A DNA stretch of 64,000 nt from Macrostomum lignano. Lineage: Eukaryota. This document shows, piece by piece, positions 2,612 through 64,000 of the stretch (the first letter of the stretch is position 1; each line of letters starts with the position of its first letter). Where the stretch lies: positions 26,161 through 90,160 of the forward strand of contig NIVC01003577.1 of NCBI GenBank assembly GCA_002269645.1. The letters are read 5' to 3'. The translations under genes were made by a program, and so were the position numbers. The notes under the pieces are model-generated. The model was given only the letters and a program-made list of their open reading frames with translations, ran no database searches and was not told the origin of the DNA.

Positions 2612-2627
2612 TTTTTATTTTAATATT

Positions 2628-3667: not shown

Positions 3668-3697
3668 TTATTTAAAAAGAAAATTTTAAATAAAATA

Positions 3698-12175: not shown

Positions 12176-12313
<138 letters not shown>

Positions 12314-17365: not shown

Positions 17366-18614
17366 ACGCAAGTAGGTTTATAGAAATAACGTTTTTTCGT
17401 GTTGAAACTCACGGCATTTCTATGTTATCCCTTGTGCTTAATAGTGTGCACTGGTACGTATCAAGCACTCAAAATGTGCTGTAAACTTAGCATTTGGAAG
17501 CCATAAATAGAAAATTGAGACAACGGGTTTGCACCTAGAAAGCTCGTAGAGTTGAAGCCGAGTGCAGTAAGCAGAAATTCAAACGGCACTCTTGAAACCG
17601 GTTGACGGGTTTTAATATCCGCCGCCTTAAATAACGCACGGCGGGTCCCGGCTGCCTCGCCTCACCTGAGCTCCAGCCCGTCTGCTCAGGCTGAGAGAGA
17701 CGGGGAAGACTGCAACGGGCAGAGAAATTAGTTGGAGGTAAAACTGGGAAGCGGAGCAAAGAGTGGACTTTTAGCAGCTCTGCTGGCTGGGGAACAATAG
17801 GCGGAGGGAAGCTGAATGCATGTAGCTGGGCCTAAGTAGCTATTGAAGGCCTTACACGTTCTACTTTATTTACCTGGCTGCCAGCCTGAAGACTGTCTGA
17901 AATCAATTGTTTTCAGGCCAACGTGTAATGGCATAGAAAACTTTACTTTTTCCCACCCTATCGGCTATCGATGACTGCAGCGTGCCTGTGACGTGACAGG
18001 CTCCTCCAGCCTTGCAGCAGCGTGGCGTCATTACCAGCGGATTGGTGGATGAAAGTGAGGTTTGAAGAGTTGAGAAGGAGCACCTGAGTATTTAGCTGGG
18101 ATGGCTGCTGCTCCAGTTGGGTGGCCTCTGTATGGGGATTCGCGAAATTAAAATATTGATTAATTGAGGGTGAAACTGCTGGTCCAGGCTCAGAGAAGCA
18201 GGAAAATTAATAGTGCATTTCAGGTGAAAGCTTTCAAGAAAGTATCCAAAATTTTCAATAAATTTCACAATCGGTTTTTTAGAAAGTAAATCTACCAATT
18301 TATTTATAAAGTTGGCTGATCAATGGTTTATACCTGAATATAAATCCGCTGGCTTCGTGACTGCATTGGCCCAGACTTTGCAGCATGAATTATTTTGTGC
18401 CGGAAGTACTGGCAGCAACTTTGATGAGTTTAGTGGTTGTTTCTGCCTAAAAGTGCAGACAATCCAAAGCGCTTACCCACTCACCCACTGGAAAAACCAT
18501 ATAAAATGATGATGCATTAAAAAACTTGAAAAAAAAGTTTGCACTGACAAATCTCCAAAAAGCATAGAAGCTGCTCCACCGCTGGGACCCAGTTTGAAGG
18601 GTTTTTCACCAAAT

Positions 18615-21338: not shown

Positions 21339-22577
21339 AGTGCACCCACAGGCTGCACTATTCCCCTACTATTAAGTTCCGAACTCTATTTACACATGTA
21401 GATTTTATTCCCGAGAAGTTCAATATTATGTCGTCATTAGTCTTTCTGTGTCTGTTTGTCTGTTTCTTCGATTTGGTTTCAATAGCGTCTAGTCATTTTT
21501 GTTTAACTGGGTAAGGAGTTTCGTTGGAAAGAAACTGTACTTTTCCGTTGTTTACCTGTCCGTCTAGTGCAGAGTCAATAGAGCAGTATTCCCTTACGGC
21601 CCGCGAGACACTCTACTGACGCGCATTAGTCGTCAGTAGACAGATGCACATTATTTTTGCTTTGTTTTTACATCGCGTAAAAGACAATTTCGATTGGCTG
21701 TCTTGTTTGCGTGGCTTATGTCTACTATTTTTCTGCATTATCTGCGTTTAATTTTAGCACAAAGCAACCTTGTATAAGTCGTTACTTTTGTCCCAGTGAG
21801 AGCATGCTTCTATCTAGATGCTATAATACCGTGTACTGTAATGCTATGTACATACTGTAAATCAGGTTCTGCAGTTGCTATTATAGCTTTTGTCTCTCGA
21901 AAATTTGTTTATTCGATAAAGCACTTGCTATTTTTTAGGTACGAGAGTATTTCACTCATGGGATTAAAGTTTGCACACTTCAGGTACAAATCAATTTATA
22001 GGACAACAATATAACGTATTTAATGGAAAAGTTTTCTGCGTTCAAAATATCTTACAAGCAGATCCCGCGCGCTTGTTGAGGCAAATGTTGCAAAAAGACA
22101 GATTGGCCATGTCTGGGCGATATTGAAAAGCTCTTATGGAAGATCTAAGCTCCATAGGCTTAAGGTTTTTCTTTGATCAACGATGAACTTGTCAGAGTTT
22201 AAGACTGCAGCCAAGGACGCCAGAGTTGTCAAGGTGATAAGAGTGGAACTACCGCTCAACACATGGCTTTAATACACGGGCACAAGAATGTGGCAAATAT
22301 CCAGCTGCAGACCATAAGTAAGACTAAGTATCTAACCACAGAAAATGTTTGCCTGAAATCCCTCGTAAACATGGAGTGGATCCGATGTTAGACAAGCTAA
22401 TGATCTGGTGGGAGAGATCTGGCAAACGACTCGATACCCCCAGTTAGCTGCTTCTGAGGGATGCGAGAGCCTCCGCTTGGCACTGAATGGGGAAAATAAA
22501 CCTTAAGAAGTGCGGGCCAAAGGCGTGCATTCCGAAACCTCTCCTTCCGTGGCTGACTCGTGGCCGGAGGAGGGTTA

Positions 22578-22876
22578 TTTTGTTGTTTTTGCTGTTGTCG
22601 TAGTTTTTGTTGTTGTTGTTGCTGTTGTTGTTATCGTCGTCGTCGTTGTTGTTCTTGCTGTTGTTATTGTTGTTGTTGTTGTTGTTTTTGTCGTTGTCGT
22701 TGTTGTTGTTGCTGTTATTATTGCTGTTATTGTTGTTGTTGTTGTTATTGTTATTGTTGTTGTTGTTGTCGTCGTCGTCGTCGTCGTCTTTGTTGTTTTT
22801 GTTGTTGTTGCTGTTGTTGTTGTTGTTATTGTTGTTATTGTTGTTGTTCTTTTTGTTGTTATTGTTGTTTTTGTCG

Positions 22877-22914
<38 letters not shown>

Positions 22915-23005
22915 ATTGTTGTTGTTGTTGTTGTTGTTATTGTTGTTGTTGTCGTTGTTGTTGTTGCTGTTATTGTTGTTGTTGTTGTTATTGTTGTTGT
23001 TGTTG
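22578..23005. repeat. Imperfect (GTT)n trinucleotide repeat
   Basis: Direct inspection. Confidence 0.97.
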
Positions 23006-23790
23006 ATTTAGTCTGGGATTTTTCATGCCGTGGCTACTATCCTCGAATCAAAGTACTCAAGTCAACAGGTTTCAATACTCAAAAACACCATACCGCATGT
23101 GTTTCGAGAGTTTGCGCCAGAAAAATACGGACCGCAATTGAGAGTCAGCACCACCTTCTTGGAGAGAAGACTGTTACGAAGTCTGACATCAGAGCATGTA
23201 AAAAAATTTTGAACAGTTTAAAATAGATATAAAATTGCCTTGAATAATAAATTATTGTACATATTTATTTGTGTGAAGAACTAGTACTGAGACACAACAA
23301 TTGGGGTTGATCAGGTTTTAAAAAGAGATTTAAAGAACATTCAATGCTTTGCCAAGAACAAAACTTAGATTAACACTGCTTACTAATATGATGGACAAAA
23401 AGTAGTATAATGGGCATTTTCATGTATCAACAGTCAGTGCAGCTCGAGATTAAAATGACTTTGAAATGGATATTAATTTTTCTAAGAGAAACCTACTGCG
23501 GCACAAAAAATATAACAAAGCAAATGAAAAAAGTATATTTTAATGAAAAACCAAGCAGACTCGAAAATAAATTGCCATGCTCTTGCCGTCAGGTCATTCA
23601 GAAAATTGGTCGTCGAGAAACGTACACACAATAAAGGGCAGTTGAAGTTTTTACGGTAGTTCTTGGAAATGTTTTCAAAACGTTTTGTTTGTTTTTTGCC
23701 ATAAATATTTTTTTTCGACTTTCTTTAAACCTAGAAGCAATTTCCAATAGCAAACGATCGGATTTTTGTTGATGAACCAGCTGAGTCAGC

Positions 23791-26644: not shown

Positions 26645-27425
26645 GTACCTGGTGAGGGATCTGGGTGTACCTGGTCAGGTATCTGGGTGTACCTGGTTAG
26701 GTATCTGGGTGTACCTGGTCAGGTATCTGGGTGTACCTGGTTAGGTATCTGGGTGTACCTGGTTAGGTATCTGGGTGTACCTGGTCAAGTATCTGGGTGT
26801 ACCTGGTCAGGTATCTGGGTGTACCTGGTTAGGCATCTGGGTGTACCTGGTCAAGTATCTGGGTGTACCTGGTCAGGTATCTGGGTGTACCTGGTTAGGT
26901 ATCTGGGTGTACCTGGTTAGGTATCTGTGTGTACCTGGTCAAGTATCTGGGTGTACCTGGTCAGGTATCTGGGTGTACCTGGTCAGGTATCTGGGTGTAC
27001 CTGGTCAGGTATCTGGGTGTACCTGGTCAGGTATCTGGGTGTACCTGGTCAGTTATCTGGGTGTACCTGGTCAGGTATCTGGGTGTACCTGGTTAGGTAT
27101 CTGGGTGTACCTGGTTAGGTATCTGGGTGTACCTGGTCAAGTATCTGGGTGTACCTGGTCAGGTATCTGGGTGTACCTGGTTAGGTATCTGGGTGTACCT
27201 GGTTAGGTATCTGGGTGTACCAGGTCAGGTATCTGGGTGTACCTGGTCAGGTATCTGGGTGTACCTGGTCAGGTATCTGGGTGTACCTGGTCAGGTATCT
27301 GGGTGTACCTGGTCAGGTAATCTGGGTGTACCTGGTCAGGTATCTGGGTGTACCTGGCCAAGTATCTGGGTGTACCTGGTCAAATATCTGGGTGTACCTG
27401 GTCAGGTATCTGGGTGTACCTGGGC
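26645..27425. repeat. 22-bp minisatellite (GTACCTGGTCAGGTATCTGGGT) in Kv intron 4
   Basis: Direct inspection. Confidence 0.96.
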
Positions 27426-27444
27426 AACAAAAGTTGTGTCTCAC

Positions 27445-28278
27445 CTGGCCACGTCTGCGGCACCAGATCGCCGTATCCAACCGTTGTCATGGTAACTAAT
27501 GACCACCAGAACCCGTCAAACATGGAGGTGAATCTCGAGTCGGTGCCCTGCCGATTGCACTTGGAGCAGTCGGTGGCTCCGCCCGCCGCTCCGCCCCCTG
27601 CGGCTGTCTGACTGTCGGATTTCTCGCAGAAGAAGATCAGAGTGCTGAAAAGCAGAGTCCCCAGAGCGACGAACACCCCCATGAGCATGAGGTCGCGGAA
27701 GGAGGTGCGCAGAGTGTAGATGAGCACTTGCAGACCCCGGTAGTGCCTGCCGATCCTCAGCAGCCTCATGAACAGGGTGATCTTCAGGAAGGCGATGTAC
27801 TCAGCCGGTCCAAAGTAGCTGCTGTCGGAGAATTCCACAATGCCGCAGAAGAACTTCAGCAGCTCGTTAATGTAGAAGGGTAAAATTGACAGAAAGTCAA
27901 TTATGGTGTAGTTATTCTTGAAATAGGCCAGCTTGTTCTTGCAGCAGATGAACCGGACGCAGAAATCGAACGTGAGGGTGCCGAACGCGATCCAGTCTGG
28001 AAAGGTCAGCCAGTCCACTTTGATCTTGGCGCTGGCGTCCGTTCGGTTGCCGTACCAGGCGGGGTGCTTGGCCGAGTAGAAGGCCACCTCTCCGGGCGTC
28101 ATGGGTCGCTGGAATCGTTCCGAGGTGCTGGCCACGAAGCTGAACACCGTGTACAGCACCGTGACGCTCAGGATGACGGCGTACACGGCGGCTGGGAAAC
28201 TCGACGAGGGATGATCGAGAATCTTCCAGCAGCGTTTGCGCAGAGCGATCAGGGCTTCTTTGATTCGCTTGCGCCAGC
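27445..28278 (-). CDS. Shaw: Shaw/Kv3-like K+ channel, exon 4 (S1-S5 and pore)
   Basis: CWKILDHPSSS; IIDFLSILPFY (S3); FMRLLRIGRHYRGLQVL (S4); FWWSLVTMTTVGYGDLVP (selectivity filter); acceptor TTAAG|GC, donor CCAG|GTGAGA; length 834 (multiple of 3). Confidence 0.95.
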
Positions 28279-28651
28279 CTTAATGGGATATTTTTGAGTG
28301 TATAAAATTGATATTTTTTGTATTTTTTATTATTCCATTCTATTTTTTCTTCCGGCTGCATTAATATTCTGGCATCCGTCAAATTTCAATATCTCTTGAC
28401 AATCGGCTGCGACTGCACTTTTACCCCTCTGTCCCGTTTTCTTGTCTCTCCCCTCTCGCTGCGCTGATTGGCTGTGGCTAAACTTCTGAACCCCCCCTGT
28501 TTCGATTTTCTTATCTCTTCCCTCTCTCTGCGCTGATTGGCTGTGGCAAACTTCCACCCATCTGTCCCATTTTTTCTGATCCCACGTGTTTCACTTGGAG
28601 CTATTGAACATGCATGAATTTGTAAGTTACACCAGAAAGACATCCCCCTAC

Positions 28652-28900
28652 CGTGTGCCTTTGACAAATCCTTCGACAGGTGCTCCTCAAGCTCCACGCT
28701 GTTCGGCAGCAGAAGCGGCTCGCTCTCCATCTCCTCTTTGAAGAAATTTTCAAACTTTTTCAGACTGACCAGACGACTTTTAGTGTCCATGAGGTGCGAG
28801 ACGCAGCAGTTCTGTATTTCGATGACTGACTGAATGCCCCACAGAGCCAGTTCGCGTTCGAGCAGGGGACCGCAGTAGTGATGAGGCACATGAAGCTCGC
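28652..28900 (-). CDS. Shaw: Shaw/Kv3-like K+ channel, exon 3 (T1 C-terminal part)
   Basis: GELHVPHHYCGPLLERELALWGI...QNCC resembles the Kv3 T1 motif [23 protein letters not shown]...CC; acceptor CCTAG|GC; donor G|GTAGGG is weaker. Confidence 0.85.
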
Positions 28901-29021
28901 CTAGGTTTGCGGGTGAGTTGGGTTGACTTTTCTCATTCCTCAGTCCCTAAGTTGTACGAGTTTATGACTCGAGAGTTTTACTAGAGAATCTTCAGGATTG
29001 AGTCCTTAGGTGGGAACTCAC

Positions 29022-29363
29022 CGTATCGGCAGTACCACAGCACAATCTTGAATATGGCCGGGTCCCTATCGAAGTAGTACTCTTGCTGAGCGGCCCTGTA
29101 GATTCCATCGTGCAACAGTTTGTCGTAGATGTACCTCTGGTTCAGCAGAGTTGCCCGCAGCACTTCGAAACGCGTACCGCTGATGTTCAGTCGGATCAGG
29201 CCCAGTACGTCCAGATTGTCCAAGTCAAGCGACTCGGCGCACTCCAAAGAGTTCTCGTCGATGAAGTGCAGATTCTCGAAGTCCGTCTTGGACAGCTCGA
29301 TCAGCTGCTGACGCTGCAGGTCGCTCAGCGAAGGCATCCTAGCGCGGCTGCTTCGCCTGCCGG
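29022..29363 (-). CDS. Shaw: Shaw/Kv3-like K+ channel, exon 2 (T1 domain)
   Basis: LIRLNISGTRFEV...QEYYFDRDPAIFKIVLWYCRYG; acceptor GTTGCAG|CC, donor G|GTGAGT; 342 nt, phase 1-1. Confidence 0.88.
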
Positions 29364-31295
29364 CTGCAACCAAAATGATCGCAAACTGATGAAGCAGAAA
29401 TGATACTGTAGGCAAGTATTGGTTGTTTTTGCTGTGGCAATAGTTCCACCTTTCTGCCCATGGGAGAGGGCTACATGTCGGTTTTTGAAGAGCTTGGTTG
29501 GGGGATGACGGCTGATGGCATGCAAAATATCTTGTCTAACCCCGTGAAACGGACTGTAACGATGCAAATACGGAGCGCTGGAACTTGCGGGACCTGGTAG
29601 CACCGAATCGCCTTCGAAAAATACCATTAGCCAGTTTTTTGTACTCTCCGTGAATCCCAGAATCCAAGGTTCGACTGGTCTCCCTCTCTCTCTCTCTCAG
29701 GGTATTCAAGGTGTTCACTTTCTGATCTGTTGCAGAGAGTTTTTTTTTCGCCAGCCGCCGCCACAGGAAAGAAGCTGTTGACGTTTCTGTCACAGCTGCC
29801 GCGCGACCACCCGAAAGTGAATGAAGGAGTGACTGGCAGGCATGGGCAGCGGATCCATGTCCCACGGGGTCCGTATGAACTCCTCACTGGCTGCTTTGAA
29901 CAGCTTGAACCGCTGGTGCTAAATTTTCCCTGTTGCATCTGCGATGACATGACTGATAAACCAGCAGCGATTCCGTTTTTTTCTTTAAAACGATTTATCT
30001 TAGCGTAGATTTGTGGTTCACACTCCTCGCAACGCAATTATTTTTTTACCGAACTGACCTCCGATTAACTGTTGGAATGCGCTGTACAAATGACTCCAGA
30101 TTTTTTTGGCGGAAATAAAATACCTTTAGTGACATCTTGACAGCTCTTTTGCATACACCATTTAGAAATACAGAAATTTCTTGTTAGCCATGAAGAATCG
30201 TGAAAATAGAAAAGTTGGTAACAGTTCAGTCGACAAAAGTGCAGTATTTGAAGTAAGGACCAATGTTCTCTTAACAGTTCACGGATTGAGCAGAACAGGA
30301 ACGACGTCAGTCTATTTGAGAATTCTGAACATATAGCCGGATTGACTTTTCTTTTAAGACGCTTCCGACTTCAACTGCAGAGGAAAGTTCATGACGATTG
30401 TTCAAGCATGTGGCAGTCTAATAATCTTACCGTGTCCGCGATCTCTGTTACCGATGCTCATTCCCGAGATGCCGCCGCTCTGGCAGTACATTTTGGCGCA
30501 ATTGAAAAAAGAGCTTTTATTGACAGCTACAGGCTGTGTTTTTGTTAAAAAAAGATTTACGCCGGTCAGGATTGCATTGAATAATCGAACAGTCGACTCC
30601 AAGGGCCAAATCTTTTTCTCTGGGAGGCGGCAGAAGCCACGTAGGCAATAAATAAATCCCAATCGAGCTAAATTGAATCCCAATGCGTCTTAGGCCGGGG
30701 ACAAGATCTCGTCCTATCCCAATTCATTTCTGTTTCCCCTCATTTCTAATAATATCTTCAAGCTGATGCGGATCGATTTTTGTGGCCTCAGCGCAACACG
30801 AGAGAGGGTGGGTGATGGGGGAGGGATGGAGAGGCCATGGATGCTGACTGGGGGGGGGGGCGTGGTAAACGTAGATTTTTCGGGAAGAAAGAAGGCATTT
30901 AAAAGTTGGGATTCAAGGCCAATATCGGGCAAGCTGGGGTATTTATAGGCCATTAGGCCAAATTTGAGGGACAGATTTCTTGAAAGCTTTTGCCAGGCAA
31001 TCATCAGTTTGATCCTCCCAGCAACTTGGCATGACTGAAAAGGCTCGAAAAGAATCCACGAATCGCTAATTAATTGGTCAGGCATGGTCCGAAAGCTGAT
31101 TGATGCCTGAAGTTCTGAAAGTACTTTTATTTATACTGCCTGGGTTGAAGTTCATGTACAACAAGGATAAACGGATGGTCCAGTGAAGGATAGCACAATA
31201 AGATCTGTTCGAACATTTTGGACATTTATCTGCCACAAAAATCATAAAGTGGCTACTTAACAGTAGTAGTAAAAATATACTGAACGACATTTTAC

Positions 31296-32099: not shown

Positions 32100-33185
32100 T
32101 TCCTGCTATGTTTAGCTTGTGGGTACAGTAAGTGTCTATAAGCTTGTCCTGGTGTGTTTAGGACAAACCTTGTTGGTACAGTAAGTACCTATAAAAATGT
32201 ATAGCAATTCATAGGTTTTGGGTACAGTAAGTGCCTAGAATTTGTCCTTGTGTGTTTAGGTTGTGGGTACAGCAAGTGCCTAGAATTTGTCCTGGTGTGT
32301 TTAGGTTGTGGGTACAGCAAGTGCCTAGAATTTGTCCTGGTGCGTTTAAGTTTTGGGTACAGTAAGTGCCTAGAATTTTTCCTGTTGTGTTTAGGTTGTG
32401 GGTACAGTAAGTGCCTAGAATTTGTCCTGGTGTGTTTAGGTTGTGGGTACAGTAAGTGCCTAGAATTTTTCCTGTTGTGTTTAGGTTGTGGGTACAGTAA
32501 GTGCCTAGAATTTGTCCTGGTGTGTTTAGGTTGTGGGTACAGTAAGTGTCTAGAATTTTTCCTGTTGTGTTTAGGTTGTGGGTACAGTAAGTGCCTAGAA
32601 TTTTTCCTGGTGTGTTTAGATTGTGGGTACAGCAAGTGCCTAGAATTTTTCCTGTTGTGTTTAGGTTGTGGGTACAGTAAGTGCCTGTAGGCTTGTCCCA
32701 GTGTGCTTTGGTTGTGGATAAAGTAAGTGTCTATAAGCTTGTTCCCTGGTGTGTTTAGATTGTGGGTACAGCAAGTGCCTAGAGTTTGTCCTGGTGTGTT
32801 TAGGTTGTGGGTTCAGTAAGTGCCTAGAATTTGTCCTGGTGTGCTTAGGTTGTGGGTACAGTAAGTGCCTAGAACTTGTCCTGGTGTGTTTAGGTTGTGG
32901 GTTCAGTAAGTGCCTAGAATTTGTGCTGGTGTGTTTAGGTTGTGGGTTCAGTAAGTGCCTAGAATTTGTGCTGGTGTGTTTAGGTTGTGGGTTCAGTAAG
33001 TGCCTAGAATTTGTGCTGGTGTGCTTAGGTTGTGGGTTCAGTAAGTGCCTAGAATTTGTCCTGGTGTGTTTAGGTTGTGGGTTCAGTAAGTGCCTAGAAT
33101 TTGTCCTGGTGTGTTTAGGTTGTGGGTTCAGTAAGTGCCTAGAATTTGTCCTGGTGTGTTTAGGTTGTGGGTTCAGTAAGTGCAT
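32100..33185. repeat. 45-bp minisatellite (GGTACAGTAAGTGCCTAGAATTTGTCCTGGTGTGTTTAGGTTGTG)
   Basis: Direct inspection; gives a 15-aa periodic spurious ORF. Confidence 0.95.
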
Positions 33186-34149
33186 TTAAGTTAGTGTATT
33201 CGTTCAGTCTTTTGCTGAAAATCTATAACTAACCTGTCAGTGTAGGATCAATTTACAAAACTTTATGGGTCCATTTAGTTATTTTCTCAATGTAAGACGG
33301 AAGTAGTTTCGTACGAGTACAAAAGAATAGTTGCAACCCAGAGGCAGCAGATGGTTCCTTTCAAACCTAAAAGTTGACAAATTAGGAATTGTAGCTTTTT
33401 CTAGCTCTTATTTGCTACAGCTATAGACGACTAACAACAAATTCACTCGAGGTCGAACACACGCTAGCGATAAAACTTGAGTATACTTTTTAGCTTTCCA
33501 AGTTTGCTCAGTCAATACCAAGGCTTGTGCTGAGAGGCTTTTGCTTAGCTGAAAGATCTCAATTCGAGGTTGTAAAAATACTGCCATAGGAGTCAAATCA
33601 AGCAAGACCCTGAGACCCAGCAGTGTGGGGTTGCAATGCGGTCATGCAAGTGAGTCGGGTGATCCGCTAAGAGAAGACCAATATCGATACAGCAACAGTT
33701 TTCTTTGGAGAAGAGAATTTATGAAATAATTATACTTTACACTTGAAGGCTAGCAGGCTACACTCTGCACTCTATCCACGAATGTGGATTGATATACAGG
33801 TGTATAGGTATATACATGTACAAGTACGTGGGTACTTTTCGATGTGGAAGCATAGCATGCACAATGTATCTTTCAACAGAGTTATATCTCTCCAGAGAGT
33901 ATCCAGCGTTAGGCTTGAGCTGAGCGGGCTTAAATAATCAAACACTCTCGGAGGACCAGATTTTGGAACCGACTGGGACCGACTTCCTCAGTTTGAAATG
34001 TCTGCTAGATACAGGAAACCAGAACTTTCTGGATAAGCTTTTCTAGTCAATGTTTGCTGTGCTCAGAAAAGTTATTGATGATCCGATAGAGGGACTGAGC
34101 TAACCTTTTTTGGACAGGCTAGCTCATGAATTATTGGCTGTGTACTTTC

Positions 34150-35612: not shown

Positions 35613-36539
35613 GGAATGGATGACAGGGGGAAGGGTGACAGTGTGGCGAATTGAAGGAGTGAACAGGATGCTTGGGTCACGGATATAGCAGGGTCACTGA
35701 CAGGGTGACCGGCACCCCAGAGATAACAGTGCCTTGAATTCAAGGCCGCTCAGCAATGGCAGTCACCCAAGAGAAAAGAATTTACTCACCTCTTAACCGC
35801 AAAAGTCCCAGCAGCTAACAGTCAGTCTTACTGTTTTATAAATTTCTAAATTGGCTTAATATTTCTTCTTTAATAATTATTGACCTGTAGATTAATGACG
35901 GCGACGAAAAGGGATTTCCAAAAAAGAGAGTAGGAGAAGTAGATTAAATAATCTTCCCCAACAGAGGCATGATGATGAGGCAACAAAAAGAGGCTGGGAG
36001 GCGCTCAGACTTCAGGAAGTGCCGGTCTAAGGGGTAATCTATCTAGGATTAGACCGGTTCCAGAGACAGATCTGGGAGCACGAGACACACAGCGGGATAA
36101 ATTTCCCATAGAAGGCTAGCTTTTGGGATTTAAAATGCGGTGGTGGACGACTGCTCAGACCCAATCAGAATTGAGATCGGTCTACCCCCTCGATCCGACT
36201 CCCCCAATTCTTGAGGGAAATGAAGAATGAATCTTAATTGATAGTGGGGGATTCGCCTTTGTATCGCATTTTTTCCTTTCGCTTTGCTGAACTCCATGGG
36301 CTTTTGTTGATCTTATCTGACCAGCCGTTCGAGACGAGTCAGACAAATTTTTTTTACTAGCTTTATTATTTTCCAGAGGTTATTGTTGAGGAGATTGAAG
36401 TCAACTGGGTTTGGAGTCAGAGATTGGAAAACTGTGCAAGTTATGGAATTCAATGTACTGTGATGCTCACAATAGTATGAGACACTGAAGTGAGGCCGGG
36501 TCTGTGCAGGGATTGAAAAAATTTTCAGAAGAGAGAGGC

Positions 36540-37850
36540 AAGGGTCTGGAAAGGGAGGAAAAGGAAGGGTCCGGGAAGGGAGGAGATGGAAGGGTCTGGG
36601 AAGGGAGGAGATGGAAGGGAGGAGATGGAAGGGTCTGGGAAGGGAGGAGAGGGAAGGGAGGAGAGGGAAGGGAGAGAGGGAAGGGTCTGGGAAGGGAGGA
36701 GAGGGAAGGAAGAAGATGGAACGGAGGAGATGGAAGGGAGTAGATGGAAGGGAGGAGAGGGAAGGGAGGAGAGGGAAGGGAGGAGATGGAAGGGAGGAAA
36801 TGGAAGGGTCTGGGAAGGGAGGAGATGGAAGGGAGTAGATGGAAGGGAGGAGATGGAAGGGAGGAGAGGGAAGGAAGGAGATGGAACGGAGGAGATGGAA
36901 GGGAGTAGATGGAAGGGAGGAGATGGAAGGGAGGAGAGGGAAGGGAGGAGAGGGGAGGGAGGAGAGGGAAGGGAGGAGATGGAAGGGAGTAGATGTAAGG
37001 GAGGAGAGGGAAGGGAGTAGATGGAAGGGAGGAGAGGGTAGGGAGGAGATGGAAGGGAGAAGATGGAAGGGAGTAGATGGAAGGGAGGAGAGGGGAGGGA
37101 GGAGAGGGAAGGGAGGAGATGGAAGGGAGGAGATGGAAGGGAGGAGATGGAAGAGAGGAGATGGAAGGGAGGAGATGGAAGGGAGGAGATGGAAGGGAGG
37201 AGATGGAAGGGAGGAGATGGAAGGGAGGAGATGGAAGGGAGGAGATGGAAGGGAGGAGATGGAAGGGAGGAGAGGGAAGGGAGGAGAGGGAAGGGAGGAG
37301 ATGGAACGGAGGAGATGGAAGGGAGTAGATGTAAGGAAGGAGAGGGAAGGGAGGAGAGGGAAGGGAGGAGATGGAAGGGAGGAGATAGAAGGGAGAAGAT
37401 GGAAGGGAGTAGATGGAAGGGAGGAGAGGGGAGGGAGGAGAGGGAAGGGAGGAGATGGAAGGGAGTAGATGTAAGGGAGGAGAGGGAAGGGAGGAGAGGG
37501 AAGGGAGGAGATGGAAGGGAGGAGAGGGGAGGGAGGAGATGGAAGGGAGGAGAGGGGAGGGAGGAGATGGAAGAGAGGAGATGGAAGGGAGGAGATGGAA
37601 GGGAGGAGATGGAAGGGAGGAGATGGAAGGGAGGAGATGGAAGGGAGGAGATGGAAGGGAGGAGATGGAAGGGAGGAGATGGAAGGGAGGAGATGGAAGG
37701 GAGGAGATGGAAGGGAGGAGATGGAAGGGAGGAGATGGAAGGGAGGAGATGGAAGGGAGGAGATGGAAGGGAGGAGATGGAAGGGAGGAGATGGAAGGGA
37801 GGAGAGGGAAGGGAGGAGACGGAAGGGAGGAGAGGGAAGGGTCTCGAAGG
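36540..37850. repeat. Purine-rich 14-bp minisatellite (GGAAGGGAGGAGAT)
   Basis: Direct inspection. Confidence 0.96.
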
Positions 37851-38319
37851 GGAGGAGAACACTTCTAGAAAAAATGCAAAAATCAAATAAATTCACCAGC
37901 AAGAAAACTTATTTTTAGCTGATTTAACAGGTGTCATTGAGTAACTTTTTGACAAATTCCACTTGTTGATTGACAGCCATGAAAGCAAGGAATATTATTA
38001 GAAAATCGTACCCCTATTCTGACTTGTTGGAGCCACTGAAAATTGGAATTACTGAAGGCATGCCCATGTTACTGACAAGATGTTGCTAAATAATTTATGC
38101 TAAGCGCATAGAAAATGCGGGGAACCTGATCCTGTGTAAATCGATATTATTGTTCCAAGAATGATTTTTATAAAAGTACCTTTTTTAAAATAATGTTGTG
38201 TAAGATACGCGATCGATAAATTGAATATGCTGAAATATTGAACTGATAGGTAAGTTAGTAAATACATACATGTACATGTACATTTAAAGTAACTTGTGCC
38301 ACATCACTTTCTGACTAGA

Positions 38320-55901: not shown

Positions 55902-56026
55902 GAGGACCGCAAACGAGCAGTGAAACTGTACATCAGCCACGTCATGGAGGAGTTCCTTGATCGCGTGTTAGTCAGCTGTCTGGAAGTATTTTATCCGCTT
56001 ATTAACAGCGGATTACTGTCTGCCAA
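55902..56026 (+). CDS. MED23: Mediator subunit 23 exon
   Basis: EDRKRAVKLYISHV...PLINSGLLSA aligns without gaps to human ESHEQCIQWIVKFI...AVETGLLPP (from memory); acceptor TTTCAG|GAG, donor AA|GTTAGT. Confidence 0.75.
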
Positions 56027-56228
56027 GTTAGTGCCTTTCAGTAATGTTTGCTTGGTTACAATAAATGGTGTACAACATCTATTATTAAGATGCTCTCTCA
56101 CACTTTCACATCATGAATGAGTTAGCTGTTCATGGATTCATTAAGGCTGAGTTATTCGGTTCGTTTTGCCCAGTTTATAAAACTCAGTTTCAAAGTGTCG
56201 CCCCGAACGAAAATCACCCCCTACTCAG

Positions 56229-56427
56229 GCACATCTGTGACGAGTTGTTGGTCTCTCACGACGATATCATGCGAAATCCGGCCTTCTTTAAAGAGGCCGT
56301 GACAGTGATGGATCGTCTGGTCAGACAGATGGACTACAAAGGCTGCAGGGATCTGTTTGGAAAAGTGTTGGGCTTGTACAAGACTTTCAGCGAAGGTGAA
56401 GACAAAGTCTTTGTTCCTGCGTTCAAG
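56229..56427 (+). CDS. MED23: Mediator subunit 23 exon
   Basis: HICDELL...VRQMDYKGCRDLFGKVL matches MED23 LVCESLI...IGGVDYKGVRDLLKVIL; acceptor CTACTCAG|G, donor AAG|GTTTGT. Confidence 0.88.
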
Positions 56428-56860
56428 GTTTGTTGCAATATTGTTTTGTTTGTTTAACAACGCTTTTAAATCTCACAAATGGCGCCTTTTAAATTCAACA
56501 AATGGCACTTTTTAAAGCCTACAAATGGCGCTTTTTAAATCCTAAAAATTTCGTTTTTTAATTCTCACAAATGGCGCTTTTAAAATTCAACAAATGGCGC
56601 CTTTGGAATCCTACAAATGACGCTTTCAACTGTACAAGTTGTTTTTTTTATCCGACAATTGAGGCTAATAAATACAAGAAATAAGTAGAGAATTTCTATG
56701 GAATTTATTGAAGCTTTAGTAAGATTTAGAAGTTTACCCGTGTGTAATAAAGTTGCTTACTGTCGATTTCTTTTAAATCAAATATTTATCTTACTTACGA
56801 GCTACAACTCGAAATTATTTATTGCTTTATAACTGTCTGTGACACCCACTGAACCCGCAG

Positions 56861-56965
56861 CTCATCACCACCCTGATGGATCGCTCGCTTTGCCTGATGC
56901 CCGCCTATTTTGCTCTGCACGAAGTGACTAAACTGCCCCCGGCTGAGCAGACCAATCTGCATCCG
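56861..56965 (+). CDS. MED23: Mediator subunit 23 exon
   Basis: LITTLMDRSLCLMPAYFALHEVTKL matches MED23 VIAYILERNACLLPAYFAVTEIRKL; acceptor CCCGCAG|CTC, donor CCG|GTGAGG. Confidence 0.88.
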
Positions 56966-57074
56966 GTGAGGCTGCTGGGCTGATTTATAGATAGATAGAT
57001 AGATAGAAAGACGAAATCAATTAAAAAACCGCACACACAGTGAGAGAAGGTACAATTTGATTTGTTTATAAACT

Positions 57075-57115
57075 AGACCAAATTTTCGGCCAAATCGTAG
57101 CTTTCGTCAGGGTCC
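57075..57115 (-). ncRNA. Minimal type I hammerhead ribozyme motif 1 (stem II base mismatch)
   Basis: GGACC-CUGACGA-A-AGCUACGAUUUGGCC-GAA-AAUU-U/GGUC. Confidence 0.6.
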
Positions 57116-57923
57116 GAAAATTTGTTTTGCGAGAAACAGTAAAGCAATGGTTTATAAAATATGAGCACTCAAAAAGAGTTTGCTGGGGACATTAAAATCA
57201 ATAAATTGTTAGAAGTGATGGGAGCGCAGCGATGAGAGATAAACTGATGAACTAACCCGGCTTGACCACGTGCAGTCAGTGCACGGGGTTTGGATGGGCA
57301 CAGAATGTCTTTTATAGAGGATTTCCAAGTTCCATTTTTTTCAAACACAATTCGTAACTTACCGTAACACCGTCGAGTCACAGTTGAACCGTCTTTCGCT
57401 GTCGACTCCCTTGAACGCTTCCCTTAATTGTGGAAGTCGTTCAAAAGATTCATTCTTCACAATGACTTTGCATTGCGTCCTGGGTGCTCACATCTCAGGT
57501 GTCTGCGTTCAATCGGACGTTCTCCTCAGTCCTCTTGGTTGGCATGGCCGGTCGAATAAAAGTCTTGAGTTGTTCTGTTTTGCTTTGCAGTTATTTTGGG
57601 ATGGTCTGACAGTTTTCATAGTGATGAACAGATCGGGAAGAGTTTCTTGACCAACCGAACCAGCCGGGCATTGTCTACTGTCATCGCACCTTTCGCACTT
57701 CGACGTTTACGAGTACGAGTACAATGATGGTGACATTCTCAGAGCCTCTGTCTTGCGACCTTGACCGGCGCCCATCCCTCCGAAGATGGTACTGGGTATC
57801 AGGTCTCCGACGGTTTGACTGCTGCTGATGCTGCGATTTGCGGGTTTCACCAGCTATCGATATCTATTCTATCGATAAATATGAATAAAGCAGAAATCAG
57901 AAGTCGTACTTTTCTTCAAAACT

Positions 57924-57960
57924 ACCAATATTTCGGCAAAATCGTGGCCTTCGTCAGGTT
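57924..57960 (-). ncRNA. Minimal type I hammerhead ribozyme motif 2 (weak stem I)
   Basis: AAC-CUGACGA-A-GGC(CACGAUUUU)GCC-GAA-AUAU-U/GGU. Confidence 0.6.
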
Positions 57961-58491
57961 AAAAGAAAATAAAATTTTGACAGTGAAGTTATTGCATCAT
58001 AACCAGGTTATTTATACACCAGCTTTGTCTGGGTGCACTAAACAGTGTTGTGTAAAAAGTGTATTAAAGCACACTGATTGGTTAGAGCTTTGCGGCTAAT
58101 GCCTCACACAAAAAATTATAGGCATTAGGAGCTATATAAAGTCACATTGAACGATTATTAAAGTGTGACTAAACAGCTTGAAAGGTATAATGAATACGTT
58201 TTAAAAAAAGTAAATTAAATTGTTATAGAGCACTGAGACCTCACTTAGGCTATCAAACTATCAGGCTATCAGTTGGCGGCGTCTGGACATACGAGTAGAC
58301 CACTTTCTGCTCAGTCCCTGGACACAGACAACTGGGCAGTGCCGTTCAGTAGTTGATGAAGTATATTTGATTCATTGATAGATAAATAGACGTTTGAAAA
58401 AGACCACTCACACATTAGCAGCTCTAACTAAGTTAGCCAAGAAATATCAAAGAGAGACGCAGAGGTCATAACTAATATAAATCAATTTAGT

Positions 58492-58532
58492 GAACCGATA
58501 CTTCGGCTGTGGATTGGCCTTCGTCAGGGTTC
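58492..58532 (-). ncRNA. Minimal type I hammerhead ribozyme motif 3 (GAAA to GAAG variant)
   Basis: GAACC-CUGACGA-A-GGC(CAAUCCACA)GCC-GAA-GUAU-C/GGUUC; perfect 5-bp stem I. Confidence 0.6.
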
Positions 58533-58749
58533 TTAGTATAATTATTAATAACAAAATGCAACGAATTTATATTGTTAGTGGGAAATAAAATATATATGTT
58601 CTTCTAAGTCACTGCATACCCGGCACCGCTGACAGGCGGTAGGAAAACGACACGCCGGGTAGAATATTTGCCGCCACGATAGTCTGATCAGACTCCTTGA
58701 TTCAATCAGGAATTGGCTCCACCGGCTCAATTGTACACTGTAAACCCCA

Positions 58750-60380
58750 GGGATCCAAAAAGGTCAAGTATTGGTCGGTATGTTAGGGTCCGCGGCGTCG
58801 CTACACCCTAAATGTCTGAATGTATGGATCCGAAAAAGGTCCAGTAGGGGTCCGTATGTTAGGGTCCGCGGCGTCGCTATATACGGACCCTAAATGTCCG
58901 AATGTATGGGTCCGAAAAAAGGTCAAGTAGGGGTCGGTATGTTAGGGTCCGCGGCGTCGCTACACCCCAAATGTCCGAATGTATGGATCCGAAGAAAGGT
59001 CAAGTAGGGGTCGGTATGTTAGGTCCGCGGCGTCGCTACACCCCAAATTTCCGAATGTATGGATCCGAAAAAAGGTCAAGTAGGGGTCGGTATGTTAGGT
59101 CCGCGGCGTCGCTCACCCCAAATGTCCGAATGTATGGATCCGAAAAAAGGTCAAGTAGGGGTCGGTATGTTAGGTCCGCGGCGTCGCTCACCCCAAATGT
59201 CCGAATGTATGGATCCGAAAAAGGTCCAGTAGGGGTCCGTATGTTAGGGTCCGCGGCGTCGCTATATACGGACCCTAAATATCCGAATGTATGGATCCGA
59301 AAAAAGGTCCAGTAGGGGTCGGTATGTTAGGTCCGCGGCGTCGCTCACCCCAAATGTCCGAATGTATGGATCCGAAAAAAGGTCAAGTAGGGGTCGGTAT
59401 GTTAGGTCCGCGGCGTCGCTCACCCCAAATATCCGAATGTATGGATCCGAAAAAAGGTCAAGTAGGGGTCGGTATGTTAGGTCCGCGGCGTCGCTCACCC
59501 CAAATGTCCGAATGTATGGATCCGAAAAAGGTCCAGTAGGGGTCCGTATGTTAGGGTCCGCGGCGTCGCTATATACGGACCCTAAATGTCCGAATGTATG
59601 GATCCGAAAAAAGGTCAAGTAGGGGTCGGTATGTTAGGTCCGCGGCGTCGCTACACCCCAAATGTCCGAATGTATGGATCCGAAAAAAGGTCCAGTAGGG
59701 TCCGTATGTTAGGGTCCGCGGCGTCGCTATATACGGACCCTAAATGTCCGAATGTATGGATCCGAAAAAAGGTCCAGTAGGGGTCAGTATGTTAGGGTCC
59801 GCGGCGTCGCTACACCCCAAATGTCCGAATGTATGGATCCGAAAAAAGGTCAAGTAGGGGTCGGTATGTTAGGTCCACGGCGTCGCTCACCCCAAATGTC
59901 CGAATGTATGGATCCGAAAAAGGTCAGTAGGGTTCCGTATGTTAGGTCCGCGGCGTCGCTATATACGGACCCTAAATGTCCGAATGTATGGATCCGAAAA
60001 AAGGTCAAGTAGGGGTCGGTATGTTAGGTCCGCGGCGTCGCTCACCCCAAATGTCCGAATGTATGGATCCGAAAAAGGTCAAGTAGGGGTCGGTATGTTA
60101 GGTCCGCGGCGTCGCTACACCCCAAATGTCCGAATGTATGGATCCGAAAAAAGGTCAAGTAGGGGTCCGTATGTTAGGGTCCGCGGCGTCGCTATATACG
60201 GACCCTAAAGTCCGAATGTATGGGTTCGAAAAAAGGTCCGGCAGGGGTCCGTATGTTAGGTCCGCGGCGTCGCTATATACGGACCCTAAAGGTCCGAATG
60301 TATGGGTTCGAAAAAAGGTCCGGCAGGGGTCCGTATGTTAGGGTCCGCGCGTCGCTATATACGGACCCTAAAGGTCGAAT
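58750..60380. repeat. GC-rich ~74-77-bp satellite with two unit types
   Basis: ATGTCCGAATGTATGGATCCGAAAAAAGGTCAAGTAGGGGTCGGTATGTTAGGTCCGCGGCGTCGCT followed by CACCCCAA (or ACACCCCAA) or ATATACGGACCCTAA; about 22 units. Confidence 0.96.
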
Positions 60381-61199
60381 GCAAGAAGGGTCCGCATGTA
60401 CGAGCGTAGTTTCGTTTGCAAGGTTGACTAGCTAAATTCAGATTTATTGGCTTTCGCACGCTTAGAAGTTAGATCAACTGATGCAAATTCTTTTTAATAA
60501 AAAGTTAATGTACACAATCGAGAACACCCATCATTTTTGTATTATAATACGAAAAAAATCACTGACAAGAAGAAAATTATACGATATGCAAGTCTTGAAT
60601 TTGTAACCATGAATTACAACACTAATATCTGTCTGCCAGATAAATGCTCCCTATCGTATTATAATTATCACATGCAGTGTATATTGACATACACTCATTA
60701 CTTGGTGTTTTATTATTTTTTCGCAACGTGAAATACTAATACAACATACATACACACGCATGAAAGTATTTCAATTATTACGTCAACGTCAAAAAGTATG
60801 CAAAAATTACATGGAACTACACGAAAATTAGATGCAAACATTATAAAAAAACATTACTTTATAAAAATATTGTTTATATTTTATAATGTCATACATGATT
60901 TTATATATAAATGAGTGATCCAGTGCTGCAGACAATACCATTTACAAGCTTCAGCTTAATATAAGAATAAACAGTATAAAAATAGCTATGCAGTATCAAT
61001 TCTGTATTAAGAAAAATTGTCATTTGTTTATTAAGGTAGCCGGTAATTGGGTTAAACTTATTAAGGTAAGTTTAAAGGGTTTTTTATTAGTGGAGACATT
61101 AATAAACCTTAAGCTTAGGTGGTGTTTAAGGGGGAACATAGACTTTCATTATACGAATAAAATGTCGAATGCTAAGTTAAAGTTTTATTAACGAAGTAT

Positions 61200-62400
61200 A
61201 GCAATCAGCGACTGGGAAGGTGCGCAGGACACAGCATCACGTCGAGGGAGTTTTCACAATACTTCTAATACGTCTCGAGGGAGGCTTCCAGATAGGGCAC
61301 ATGCTGCAGGTAAACGATACGGAACAGATTGCAATTACTTTCGCCTTCCTTCAGAATTTCAATTGGCAGCTCAGTATCAAAAAAGTTTCGCAGGGTCAAT
61401 CCTTAATCGATCAAGGTGCAGGCAAAGGCCGTTTATTAGAATGGTGTCGTCGTTATCACATTCAGCGTTCAGAAACGGCTAGCAGTACAAGTACCGCTTC
61501 ATTGCATCTCGTTCTTGCCACACATGCCGGAGTGCACCGCATACATTTTGTTCAATATCCTCAGGTGTTCGAGGAAACACATAGTCAGCCTTGCGTCTAG
61601 AGTTATACAACTGAATCATAAGAAATGCCTCTTGCAACTGAACACGTGGTAGTGATAATGGCTTATACAATTCAGCCTCCTCTTCAACAGTTCTCTCTTG
61701 GCAACGCACGACTCGCACACTAAATAGACTTTTCATATTGCTTAATACCTCTTCGATTTCCATTGTGTGGAAATTTTTGTTCAACCTAATTCGGTCAACT
61801 TCGTGACTTTCAGGAACGCATTCCACATCTCCAAAAATGACGCTTTTGACAAGCTTGCTTGTCGATGTAGTCGTACTCTCAGCATCCTCACAGTTGACTT
61901 GCAGGCGCTTTGCTTGTACTACGTTTTCGTCATCATCGGACGCATCTACGATGGTAGCAATTTTTCGGCGCTTACTTGCAAATGAAACTACGTTTTCTTC
62001 GTCACTATCCTCATCATTTTCCGCCATGCACGACGCGGAAATGCCGGAGTTGCTGAATTAGCAGCGAATCTTCGTGAATTTTCTGCCACCAAAAAATAGT
62101 CCATCGCTCGACCCGTCTCGCATTCCTGGGTACATAGAAACGATGGAGATGGTTATGTCATTTAGCTCTTTTCCATAAAGATACGGATCTTGCCGGCTTT
62201 TATAATTGTTAAAGACGTCATTGATGATGTAAGTTAAAAACTTGTTGACGAAATTCGCCTTTAACATAAGGTCCGTTCCAAACCGAGGATTGCGCTCTAG
62301 CTTATTGAGGGCGGACTCCAAATCAGCCATTTTTGGCCACGGACTCCACGTGGACCCCTGGAGTTTACAGTATAGCAACACCAGCAGGGGCGCCCTCGCA
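61200..62400 (-). pseudogene. Disrupted ORF remnants (61479-62027, 62058-62381), probably transposon-derived
   Basis: Protein-like frames with acidic/NLS-like segments and ELNDITISIVSMYPGMRDG, broken by stops; no confident family assignment. Confidence 0.35.
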
Positions 62401-62589
62401 GCAGCAGCAGCGGGAGTGCCGGAAAGCCCAGAATCAGCAGAAGCAGGGCCGCCTGGAAGCCAGAAGCAGCAGCATTAGGGCTGAGTCAGCCACCACCAAA
62501 AACTCTGTAGGCAAGACTTCTTCATCACCGGATTCTTTCAAAAAATTGGTTCCTCTTTAATAAGATGAAGTATTTTCCTGGGATTTGCC

Positions 62590-62760
62590 AACGAGACTTT
62601 GCAGACAACGCCGCCTGGTGGCCATCTTTTGCGCACTGCCTCTATATGGTTGGCGAAAGTCAGTTGGTCGTCTAGGCGAAGGCCAAGGAACGTGGGTGTC
62701 GGTCGTAGGTTAATTCCTGTCCCTCAATGCGCAGCGTTGGGAGGATCTTTCCGCGCATTC
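62590..62760 (-). mobile_element. Non-LTR retrotransposon RT C-terminal fragment
   Basis: LRIEGQELTYDRHPTFLGLRLDDQLTFANHIEAVRK matches the (Y/F)LGxxLDxxLTFxxHI motif of LINE RTs. Confidence 0.7.
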
Positions 62761-63141
62761 ACTGGTGTCTAATGTTTTTAAAGTAAATTAAATTGTTACA
62801 GAGCACTACGACCTTACTTAAACTGGTTAAAGAAGGGTAAATAATTACATACTGATGCATATGCAGTAATTTAATTGTTTATCCTGGCAAGCCACAAGTA
62901 TCAGTGGCGGCGTCTGGACACAGATCACCGTCTGCTCAGTCCCTGGACACAGACAACTGGCACTGCCGTTTAGTAGTTAATGAAGTATATTTGATCCATA
63001 GATAGATAGAAAGATAGATGGATATATAGATCGAAAGATCGATAAATAGATAAATAGAGATATCTACGAGTATAAGACAGTCTGAAACCGCAACGACACG
63101 CACACGGAAGATTGAAGTTTTCAGGTGTCAAACTTTGAAAT

Positions 63142-63180
63142 AACCGATATTTCGGCCAAATCATGGCCTTCGTCAGGGTT
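63142..63180 (-). ncRNA. Minimal type I hammerhead ribozyme motif 4 (best preserved)
   Basis: AACC-CUGACGA-A-GGCCA(UGAUU)UGGCC-GAA-AUAU-C/GGUU: intact core, 5-bp stem II, palindromic AUAU stem III, AUC cleavage triplet, AACC/GGUU stem I. Confidence 0.8.
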
Positions 63181-63639
63181 TATTTGAGGGTATATAAAGT
63201 AGCAATTATTTTGTAGTGAAGTTATTTCCTCATAACATTATTATTTATGTACCAGCTTTGGCTGGGTGCACTGAGCAGTGTTGTGTAAAAATGCACGTAC
63301 ATATAGCTAATACAAAGAGGGAATTAAAGCACTCTGACTGGTTAAGGCATTACAGCTTAGAAATGTGACTAACCAGCTTGAAAAATACTACAAATAAGTT
63401 ATTTAGAAAATAAATAATTGTTATAGAGCACTGAGAACTCTGACTAATTAACGAAGTGTAAATAATTTGATGCACATACGAGATTAAATTAGTTTGAGTA
63501 GGCCAGACCGGCCACAAGTAGCAGTTCATGGCATCTGGTCAACAGACGTAGTAGTCGTAGTCTTAGTAGAGTCGTACTGGTAGACTGTTTTAATGTAGCC
63601 AGACAAGTCACGAGTCGCAGTTGGCGGCGTCTGTTCACT

Positions 63640-63905
63640 GACTGCTGTCTGCTCAGACCCTGTTCACAGACTGCTGTCTGCTCAGACCCTGTTCACAGAC
63701 TGCTGTCTGCTCAGACCCTGTTCACAGACTGCTGTCTGCTCAAGACCCTGTTTTACAGACTGTCTGTCTGCTCAGACCATGTTTACAGACTGCTGTCTGC
63801 TCAGACCCTGTTTACAGACTGCTGTCTGCTCAGACCCTGTTTACAGACTGCTGTCTGCTCAGACCCTGTTTACAGACTACTGTCTGCTCAGACCCTGTTC
63901 ACAGG
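63640..63905. repeat. 29-bp minisatellite (ACTGCTGTCTGCTCAGACCCTGTTCACAG) amplified from a segment of the ribozyme-bounded module
   Basis: TCTGCTCAG.CCCTG..CACAG is present once at about 58305 and 62930 and in tandem here. Confidence 0.9.
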
Positions 63906-64000
63906 CAACTGGGCACTGTATTTCAGTAGTAGACTAATAGTAGAAAGTTGTAGTAGTAGTCCTAGTCGTAGTAGAGTCGTACGGGTGTCTATATTTTATA

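Follow-up and report, generated by a model that had tools for sequence, protein, structure and literature searches.

Penelope-type hammerhead motifs in noncoding repeats associated with GATA microsatellites in Macrostomum lignano

Penelope-like elements (PLEs) carry a distinctive hammerhead ribozyme (HHR) with three hallmarks: one additional nucleotide between A9 and G10.1, a G10.1-C11.1 pair, and a palindromic mini helix III (PMC4209133). PLE hammerheads are known in flatworms (Schistosoma), insects, rotifers, and shrimps, and variants with a "small palindromic helix III" have been noted in Drosophila, rotifers, shrimps, and mosquitoes (PMC4209133). Within PLEs, HHRs lie near the 3' ends in pseudo-long terminal repeats (pLTRs); insertions form head-to-tail clusters, short "tails" mark insertion ends, and several clades insert into microsatellites, with Neptune and Naiad found at (TA)n and Chlamys at (CA)n and (C)n (PMC8557442). 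The only PLE to have been reconstituted, PAc Poseidon from Anolis, begins reverse transcription at an internal position, 85-92 nt downstream of the site at which the HHR cuts; this HHR is weak when protein is absent, and insertion in vitro does not require it (PMC11167929). A preprint from 2026 makes the case that the retrozymes of animals derive from PLE pLTRs (bioRxiv 10.64898/2026.07.22.740005). Here we describe four HHR-like motifs, and the noncoding repeats that bear them, in a 64,000-nt stretch of the Macrostomum lignano genome (assembly GCA_002269645.1, contig NIVC01003577.1, positions 26,161 to 90,160 of the forward strand), hereafter the window, whose own coordinates are used throughout. 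The explanation that we favor, with a confidence modestly above even, is that the locus is a head-to-tail minus-strand pile-up of at least five PLE-derived copies that lack a reverse transcriptase (RT), were inserted serially into a (GATA)n microsatellite, and were mobilized in trans.

The four motifs occur at 57070-57120 (HHR1), 57917-57967 (HHR2), 58487-58537 (HHR3), and 63136-63186 (HHR4), all on the minus strand. They follow a common layout, in which the 5' strand of helix I is succeeded by CUGACGA, a single A, a hairpin (GGCC, a 7-9-nt loop, and GGCC), GAAA, UA, and U-H; the predicted cut comes next and is followed by GGU. When the motifs were aligned with 30-100 nt of flanking sequence, conservation was confined to a core of ~45 nt, and the flanks were unrelated. 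The base of helix I (ACC/GGU) is invariant in this core, and helix II reads GGC(C)/(G)GCC. A 28-nt consensus (CCTGACGAAGGCCANNNTTTGGCCGAAA), allowing ≤3 mismatches, matched three of the four motifs against a chance expectation of 0.00; the unmatched motif, HHR3, is set apart by a different loop 2 and by GAAG instead of GAAA. The best-preserved motif is HHR4, an exact consensus match composed of AAACC, CUGACGA, A, GGCC-AUGAUUU-GGCC, GAAA, UA, and UC, and a cofold of the HHR4 dimer predicts helices I and II. Based on covariance-model alignments, cleavage is predicted at 63146/63145 in HHR4 (then GGUUAUUU), 58497/58496 in HHR3, 57927/57926 in HHR2, and 57080/57079 in HHR1. The cut-to-cut distances are therefore 4649 nt (HHR4-HHR3), 570 nt (HHR3-HHR2), and 847 nt (HHR2-HHR1), the last two being the spacings that the original prediction had given.

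All four motifs have type-I topology, with helices I and II around the core and helix I open-ended. The core is complete in HHR2 and HHR4; HHR3 has G at position 15.1 (A15.1 to G), and HHR1 retains the core with A at position 10.1. The extra base between A9 and G10.1 is present in every motif (CUGACGA-A-GG), the G10.1-C11.1 pair in three of the four. Helix III is a single base pair closed by a palindromic dinucleotide loop, reading AUAU in HHR2 and HHR4, AAUU in HHR1, and GUAU (with a wobble pair) in HHR3. The difference between AUAU and AAUU in HHR1 is a double change that leaves the palindrome intact, which would be expected were pairing between two copies to involve that segment. A helix II of 4 bp is like that of canonical hammerheads; PLE-like traits are the additional base and a loop 1 that is not closed. 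Judged by these sequence features, the four motifs are assigned to the hammerhead ribozymes of PLE type. The hammerhead models in Rfam detected none of them, either at the gathering threshold or at E ≤10, and a rigid pattern with fixed gaps gave no match.

Hammerhead positions 10.1 and 15.1 are normally invariant. Because the changes in HHR1 and HHR3 affect these positions, HHR1, which has an A.C mismatch at the base of helix II, is probably inactive, and HHR3, in which helix II is GGC/GCC with a loop of 8-9 nt, is probably impaired or inactive. HHR2 has an intact core, a GGC/GCC helix II, and one mismatch in helix I. Within loop 2 of HHR4, an AUG opens a 64-codon frame (62970-63164, minus strand) that extends across the adjoining spacer and TATC tract. 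The open reading frame (ORF) of PAc Poseidon starts inside its hammerhead (PMC11167929); the frame in HHR4 is probably fortuitous, because HHR1 and HHR2 carry ACG at the same place.

A relaxed version of the core pattern, run over public metagenome contigs, matched 35 loci; removal of GC-rich, bacterial-looking chance matches and duplicates left 17 distinct motifs, which were aligned. A strict HHR pattern had no match in the metagenome or viral collections. The 17 HHRs covary in helices I and II, with 72% paired cells compared with 63% after shuffling (none of 500 shuffles was as high), and slid controls had 29-41% paired. We used these 17 HHRs, without any sequence from the window, to build a covariance model (R1). 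Across the 64 kb, R1 returned exactly four matches: HHR4 (41.1 bits, E 1.9e-11), HHR2 (37.0 bits, E 5.8e-10), HHR3 (33.0 bits, E 1.5e-8), and HHR1 (19.6 bits, E 7.9e-4). There was no further match at E <1 in the window, nor was there one with filters off over 55-64 kb.

In several metagenome loci, the same HHR subtype lies beside PLE coding sequence. At locus L018, an ORF of 871 aa that encodes RVT_1 and GIY-YIG domains precedes it by ~120 nt; at L009, it adjoins a PLE-type RT ORF (E 4e-14 against L018), and it likewise adjoins PLE-type RT ORFs at L010, L011, L026, L029, and L034. The ribozyme type is therefore PLE-associated, and the predicted link to a Penelope-like RT holds at this level. 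The ORF downstream of the HHR at L009 could not be aligned with the PLE protein of L018. Five of these loci (L009, L010, L011, L026, and L034) have a ~6.0-kb unit in which this HHR subtype is followed first by an ORF of ~700 aa that has no Pfam match and then by a ~640-aa PLE-type RT ORF, the RT ORFs being 59% identical among themselves. At L010, the distance between HHRs at 20-48 and 6043-6071 is 6023 nt, a spacing due either to tandem copies or to circularity of the assembly.

Using BLAST of the region against the whole window, alignment, and block-wise identities, we distinguished three unrelated bodies (X, Y, and Z) that have only the ~45-nt HHR core in common. Body X is represented by the noncoding copy A (57968-58365) and its homologs B1 (62780-62997) and B2 (63187-63940), all on the minus strand; unit A at 57924-58390 matches 62780-63014 (B1) and 63143-63933 (B2). 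The landmarks of the 570-nt unit recur on both sides of HHR4, as had been predicted, with identities to copy A of 85-90% in B1 and 76-84% in B2. B1 and B2, which are neighbors, are the least similar pair at 73-80%, and the closer similarity of B1 to the distant copy A (86-90% in the block-wise comparison) indicates separate insertions. The 5' end of copy A (ATGAATCAAATATAC...) abuts a TATC tract, and B1 has the same 5' end beside (TATC)n; A and B1 thus share their first nucleotide (ATGRATCAAATATAC...), directly after the tract. At the other end, A and B2 cease to be homologous no more than a few bases from the ribozyme cut site. B1 comprises only the 5' ~235 nt of the body and ends at 62780. 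B2 contains a 29-nt internal repeat expanded to nine copies (63631-63904) and a ~405-nt internal duplication (63548-63581 matches 63953-63986) that reaches the window end.

Body Y (57121-57845, minus strand) occupies the 847-nt interval; it is unrelated to X, GC-richer, and noncoding, in line with the prediction of a different cargo there. Body Z (58538-58756, minus strand) lies upstream of HHR3, is unrelated to X and Y, and abuts a satellite with 75-77-nt units. BLAST found no similarity to Y or Z elsewhere in the window. We also considered whether HHR3 and its upstream sequence could be the missing 3' half of B1, split off by an insertion; this was rejected, as there is no similarity. The recurrence of the 570-nt body was upheld, and its tandem repetition only in part: only copy A is complete from ribozyme to ribozyme, B1 stops short, B2 runs into the duplication and the window end, and the 4649 nt between HHR4 and HHR3 have unrelated contents.

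Downstream of each predicted cut, a spacer of 53-106 nt leads to a tract of TATC or related repeats on the minus strand. Spacer 1 (57011-57079; 69 nt from the HHR1 cut to (TATC)n) has GUGUGUGCGGUUU 16-20 nt before its tract; spacer 2 (57874-57926; 53 nt after HHR2) is without this GU-rich motif; spacer 3 (58391-58496; 106 nt after HHR3) has GUGUGAGUGGUCU near its 3' end; and spacer 4 (63059-63145; 87 nt after HHR4) carries GUGUGCGUGUCGUUGCGGUUU. In no pairing are the four spacers significantly alike (z -0.7 to 1.7). The GU-rich motif is common to three of the four, lying 11-27 nt before the tract, and has four matches in the window compared with 0.28 expected.

The original prediction placed a (TATC)-type tract after every ribozyme on the minus strand; this is correct for HHR1 and HHR4. 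A (TATC)~5 tract (56985-57010, minus strand) forms the 3' end of the whole array, beyond which the sequence is unique intron and exon, and an imperfect (TATC)~15 tract (62998-63058, minus strand; TRF period 4, 15.2 copies) separates spacer 4 from B1. The tract after HHR3, between spacer 3 and copy A (58366-58390, minus strand; TATTTATCTATC / TATTTATCTATCAATG), is short and degenerate, and that after HHR2, between A and Y (57846-57873, minus strand), is a degenerate, ATCGAT-rich mixture of TATC and GATA in both orientations. Strict tracts of (GATA)≥3 occur only three times in the window, at 56987-57006, at 62998-63009, where the strict tract is the core of the imperfect one of 15 units, and at 12180-12311. 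The first two lie downstream of HHR1 (at 69 nt) and of HHR4 (at 87 nt). The third belongs to a feature at 12148-12311 (minus strand) in which GCCGAAAUAUC (GCCGAAATATC) lies 22 nt beyond (TATC)33 on the same strand; this sequence corresponds to the 3' half of a hammerhead including the cut site. An 11-mer from this fragment is expected 0.04 times per window and was found three times, the other two occurrences being HHR2 and HHR4. This feature is probably a fifth copy, truncated at its 5' end. Each of the three (GATA)≥3 tracts thereby touches HHR sequence; the association between HHRs and GATA microsatellites, which had been proposed, is non-random.

These arrangements bear on the idea that the region is an inert, locally duplicated stretch of repeats and satellites in which the hammerhead-like strings and GATA tracts are passive and nothing has been mobile. 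The surroundings are rich in tandem repeats, the copies are old, and two HHRs are defective, all of which such a history would accommodate. However, the HHR flanks are unrelated around a conserved 45-nt core, the opposite of what segmental duplication would be expected to leave; in addition, 45 kb away, a separate GATA microsatellite has another HHR fragment next to it, and the motif type matches PLE elements elsewhere. We regard this account as highly improbable.

The units are bounded by ribozymes, noncoding, and in the same orientation, features that would also be found in a true metazoan non-LTR (long terminal repeat) retrozyme, in which the 570-nt unit (and the 847-nt unit) from HHR to HHR would be mobile by self-cleavage, circular RNA formation, and rolling-circle reverse transcription into tandem DNA. 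The GC content of the 570-nt unit (0.37, compared with 0.45 for the 847-nt unit) is in line with that of retrozymes, which is below 45% (PMC7229834), and a helix III that is palindromic implies that the ribozymes act on RNA multimers. Retrozymes are, moreover, now thought to derive from PLE pLTRs, so that this explanation and one based on PLEs are close relatives and not opposites. Against it, the array is not homogeneous: the intervals of 570, 847, and 4649 nt have unrelated contents, the X copies are 73-90% identical with adjacent copies the least similar pair, and spacers 3 and 4, which would be the 5' part of an X unit, are unrelated. The HHRs are of the PLE-type variant and not the canonical loop-loop type, and the unit size exceeds the ~170-400 nt reported for animals (PMC7229834). 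The fold z-scores of the 570-nt and 847-nt units (-1.3 and -1.7) are unremarkable; compact, viroid-like folding was considered and not seen. Plant LTR retrozymes have type-III HHRs within LTRs of ~350 bp, together with a PBS and a PPT; the HHRs here are type I, and there is no LTR pair. Together with the changes in HHR1 and HHR3, these observations speak against the predicted tandem array of one retrozyme monomer; a mobile retrozyme is an improbable explanation, and a circular RNA-based life cycle is possible but unsupported.

On the ribozyme strand, there is no ORF longer than 50 aa in copy A and none longer than 70 aa inside A, Y, or Z. The two longest inter-ribozyme gaps (Y, at ~56.9-57.85 kb, and a second at ~61.2-62.8 kb) were searched against Pfam in all three minus-strand frames, and the rest of the region as ORFs; there was no match. 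TBLASTN searches of the entire window, with the PLE proteins of L018 and L009 as queries, gave nothing below E 0.2. The modules are therefore noncoding, as predicted, with no remnant of a PLE RT or endonuclease (EN). ARAGORN identified no tRNA-like sequence over 56000-64000, such as would form the head of a tRNA-derived short interspersed element (SINE). The combination of PLE RT/GIY-YIG ORFs with this hammerhead, which the original prediction had suggested looking for, thus exists in metagenome loci (L018 and others), and no such ORF is present in the window; with no RT/EN coding sequence in the window, the HHRs here do not lie in the pLTR of an element with RT and GIY-YIG.

A possible explanation, although on the unlikely side, is that the copies come from three families of autonomous PLEs, either as solo pLTR retrocopies or as 3' ends with 5' truncation, with no independent nonautonomous lineages. 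Genomic PLE hammerheads are mostly single motifs from truncated PLEs (PMC4209133), and the HHR of known PLEs sits in the pLTR near the 3' end. The pLTR has an internal promoter, and transcripts from it would have a constant 5' end, as A and B1 do. The part of the pLTR that precedes the HHR measures between ~120 and ~1270 nt in L009 and L018; a noncoding stretch of 400-720 nt is therefore compatible with a solo pLTR. On the other hand, there is no RT/EN remnant upstream of any of the four HHRs, and random 5' truncation would not leave A and B1 with the same first nucleotide.

We therefore return to a serial pile-up of RT-less, PLE-derived copies, for which mobilization by a PLE enzyme would be the most reasonable interpretation by analogy with the loci described above. 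Each copy would have a 3' module consisting of a minimal type-I hammerhead of PLE type, a spacer of 53-106 nt, and, usually, a GU-rich motif near the end, and each would be flanked by (TATC)n. A PLE RT/GIY-YIG enzyme encoded elsewhere in the genome would recognize this hammerhead-proximal module and, a few tens of nucleotides beyond the ribozyme cut, begin reverse transcription; the cut-to-junction distance of 53-106 nt matches the 85-92 nt of PAc Poseidon. Integration would occur into or beside (GATA)n/(TATC)n in a fixed orientation, and repeated hits on one microsatellite would build the array. With a 1-bp palindromic helix III, the ribozymes would be active only through the pairing of two copies on a multi-copy transcript, and the paired hammerheads would trim read-through RNA to unit length. 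The layout, in which a body and an HHR are followed after 53-106 nt by a junction, with TATC on both sides, one orientation, and neighbors that are not closest relatives, fits serial target-primed insertions; from it we infer trans-mobilization, target choice, dimeric cleavage, and the order of events. Given the age of the copies (73-90% identity) and the damage to two of the four ribozymes, the locus is most likely a fossil.

Several points weigh against this explanation. There is no autonomous PLE in the window, and the enzyme partner is therefore hypothetical. Among the tracts that flank the HHRs, only two are clean TATC, and the GU-rich motif in the spacers was defined post hoc, after the sequences had been seen. 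Spacers 2 and 4 are unlike although both follow homologous bodies, a mismatch that fits ownership of the spacer neither by the upstream element nor by the downstream unit unless one also assumes, for example, an exchange of modules at a conserved HHR or a Y insertion that truncated the 3' end of A. Lastly, the R1 E-values (1.9e-11 to 7.9e-4) overstate independence, because the scan pattern was taken from the window motif and thereby fixed the core columns by construction; the helices and geometry were not fixed by the seed pattern.

More speculatively, and in our view rather unlikely as it stands, a macrostomid-like flatworm PLE lineage may have specialized on (GATA)n, by targeting or by seeding, and may support several unrelated noncoding parasites that share only the hammerhead-centered 3' module. 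The breaks in homology exactly at the cut site and at the microsatellite suggest that bodies and 3' modules were reshuffled at the hammerhead, by cleavage-ligation or by template switching. No new class of element is involved, as elements of this kind are already known. The suggestion that the family might be undescribed was too strong, given published PLE hammerheads, including those of flatworms (PMC4209133), metazoan retrozymes (PMC7229834), and their derivation from pLTRs (10.64898/2026.07.22.740005). The one mildly new point is the GATA association; genome-wide follow-up is merited only by this association and by the breaks in homology at the cut site. If confirmed genome-wide, the locus would provide a flatworm example of animal hammerhead repeats as RT-less dependents of PLEs, and the tetranucleotide GATA would join the simple repeats to which PLEs home. 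If confirmed, the four diverged ribozymes, with two core changes and one compensatory change in the palindrome, would also form a natural test set for the dimer model of PLE hammerheads.

The array appears to be intronic, beginning ~20 nt after plus-strand exon-like sequence with a GT donor (read by eye). Directly upstream of Z on the minus strand is the satellite (58757-60357), with ~20 copies of its 75-77-nt unit and higher-order periods of 232 and 307; the only Rfam matches, two to Corona_FSE inside it (E 6-9), were dismissed as chance. The sequence that interrupts the array (60358-62779) is unrelated to the HHR system and contains an AT-rich stretch and a 283-codon frame (62330-61479, minus strand) with one in-frame stop and an acidic, serine-rich middle, for which we found no Pfam domain and no homolog in a large protein collection. 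At ~62590-62750 (minus strand), the sequence resembles by eye the C-terminal region of a non-LTR RT, which we do not claim, as Pfam and PDB sequences give no support.

Farther away, exons of a voltage-gated K+ channel are located at 27380-29415 (minus strand; Ion_trans and BTB_2/T1 domains), and the exon at 27380-28186 has its best matches in Macrostomum lignano proteins (72% identity). A 765-aa Gypsy-type pol ORF (4890-7187, plus strand) encodes an integrase (rve, SH3) upstream of RT-RNase H, an order that we take to be that of Gmr1-like Ty3/gypsy elements; its best relatives, in fishes, echinoderms, and molluscs, are 38-47% identical. A cluster of ORFs resembling those of transposable elements or viruses (574-4012) includes a 485-aa ORF without a Pfam match (574-2031, minus strand), an rve integrase (2861-3667, minus strand), and an ORF with the phospholipase A2-like domain PF08398 (3455-4012, plus strand). 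The window is very repeat-rich, with long minisatellite or low-complexity arrays at 7967-8938, 16711-17412, 22510-23226, 32189-33189, and 36313-37918, which yield spurious long ORFs on both strands.

Among the repeats of flatworms, Sm-alpha of Schistosoma is SINE-like, with a canonical HHR and a ~330-bp unit; by description only, the present repeats are like it in occurring in a flatworm and in being short, noncoding, hammerhead-bearing, and dispersed or tandem. Sm-alpha is cited in PMC4209133 and PMC8490949. With metazoan non-LTR retrozymes (PMC7229834; 10.64898/2026.07.22.740005), they share a noncoding, hammerhead-bearing, RT-less, and low-GC nature (low GC in the 570-nt unit only), a presumed dependence on PLEs, and a bias toward multimers. 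Retrozymes, however, consist of ~170-400-bp monomers in uniform tandem arrays, carry canonical type-I HHRs, and have proven circular RNAs, whereas the intervals here are heterogeneous, the bodies are unrelated, and the HHRs are PLE-type. PAc Poseidon is similar in the geometry of its 3' module, in an HHR that is weak alone, and in its integration into AT-rich DNA; it differs in being autonomous, in having an AC-rich stem-loop start site where the ribozyme strand here has a GU-rich motif, and in lacking a microsatellite flank. The bias toward insertion at simple repeats and the complex head-to-tail clusters are reminiscent of Neptune, Naiad, and Chlamys; here, the repeat is the tetranucleotide GATA and the targeting enzyme is hypothetical, and Naiad and Chlamys are mostly without canonical HHRs. 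The closest likeness in the ribozyme itself is to the PLE hammerheads (PMC4209133). Helix II is 3-4 bp with a 7-9-nt loop at this locus, compared with 7-8 bp in the Schistosoma minimal HHR, there is no PLE ORF nearby, and an association with GATA microsatellites is absent from that description. What the two have in common is the type-I topology, the unpaired nucleotide between A9 and G10.1, the G10.1-C11.1 pair, the 1-bp helix III with its palindromic loop, high variability outside the core, and an occurrence mostly as single motifs away from intact PLEs.

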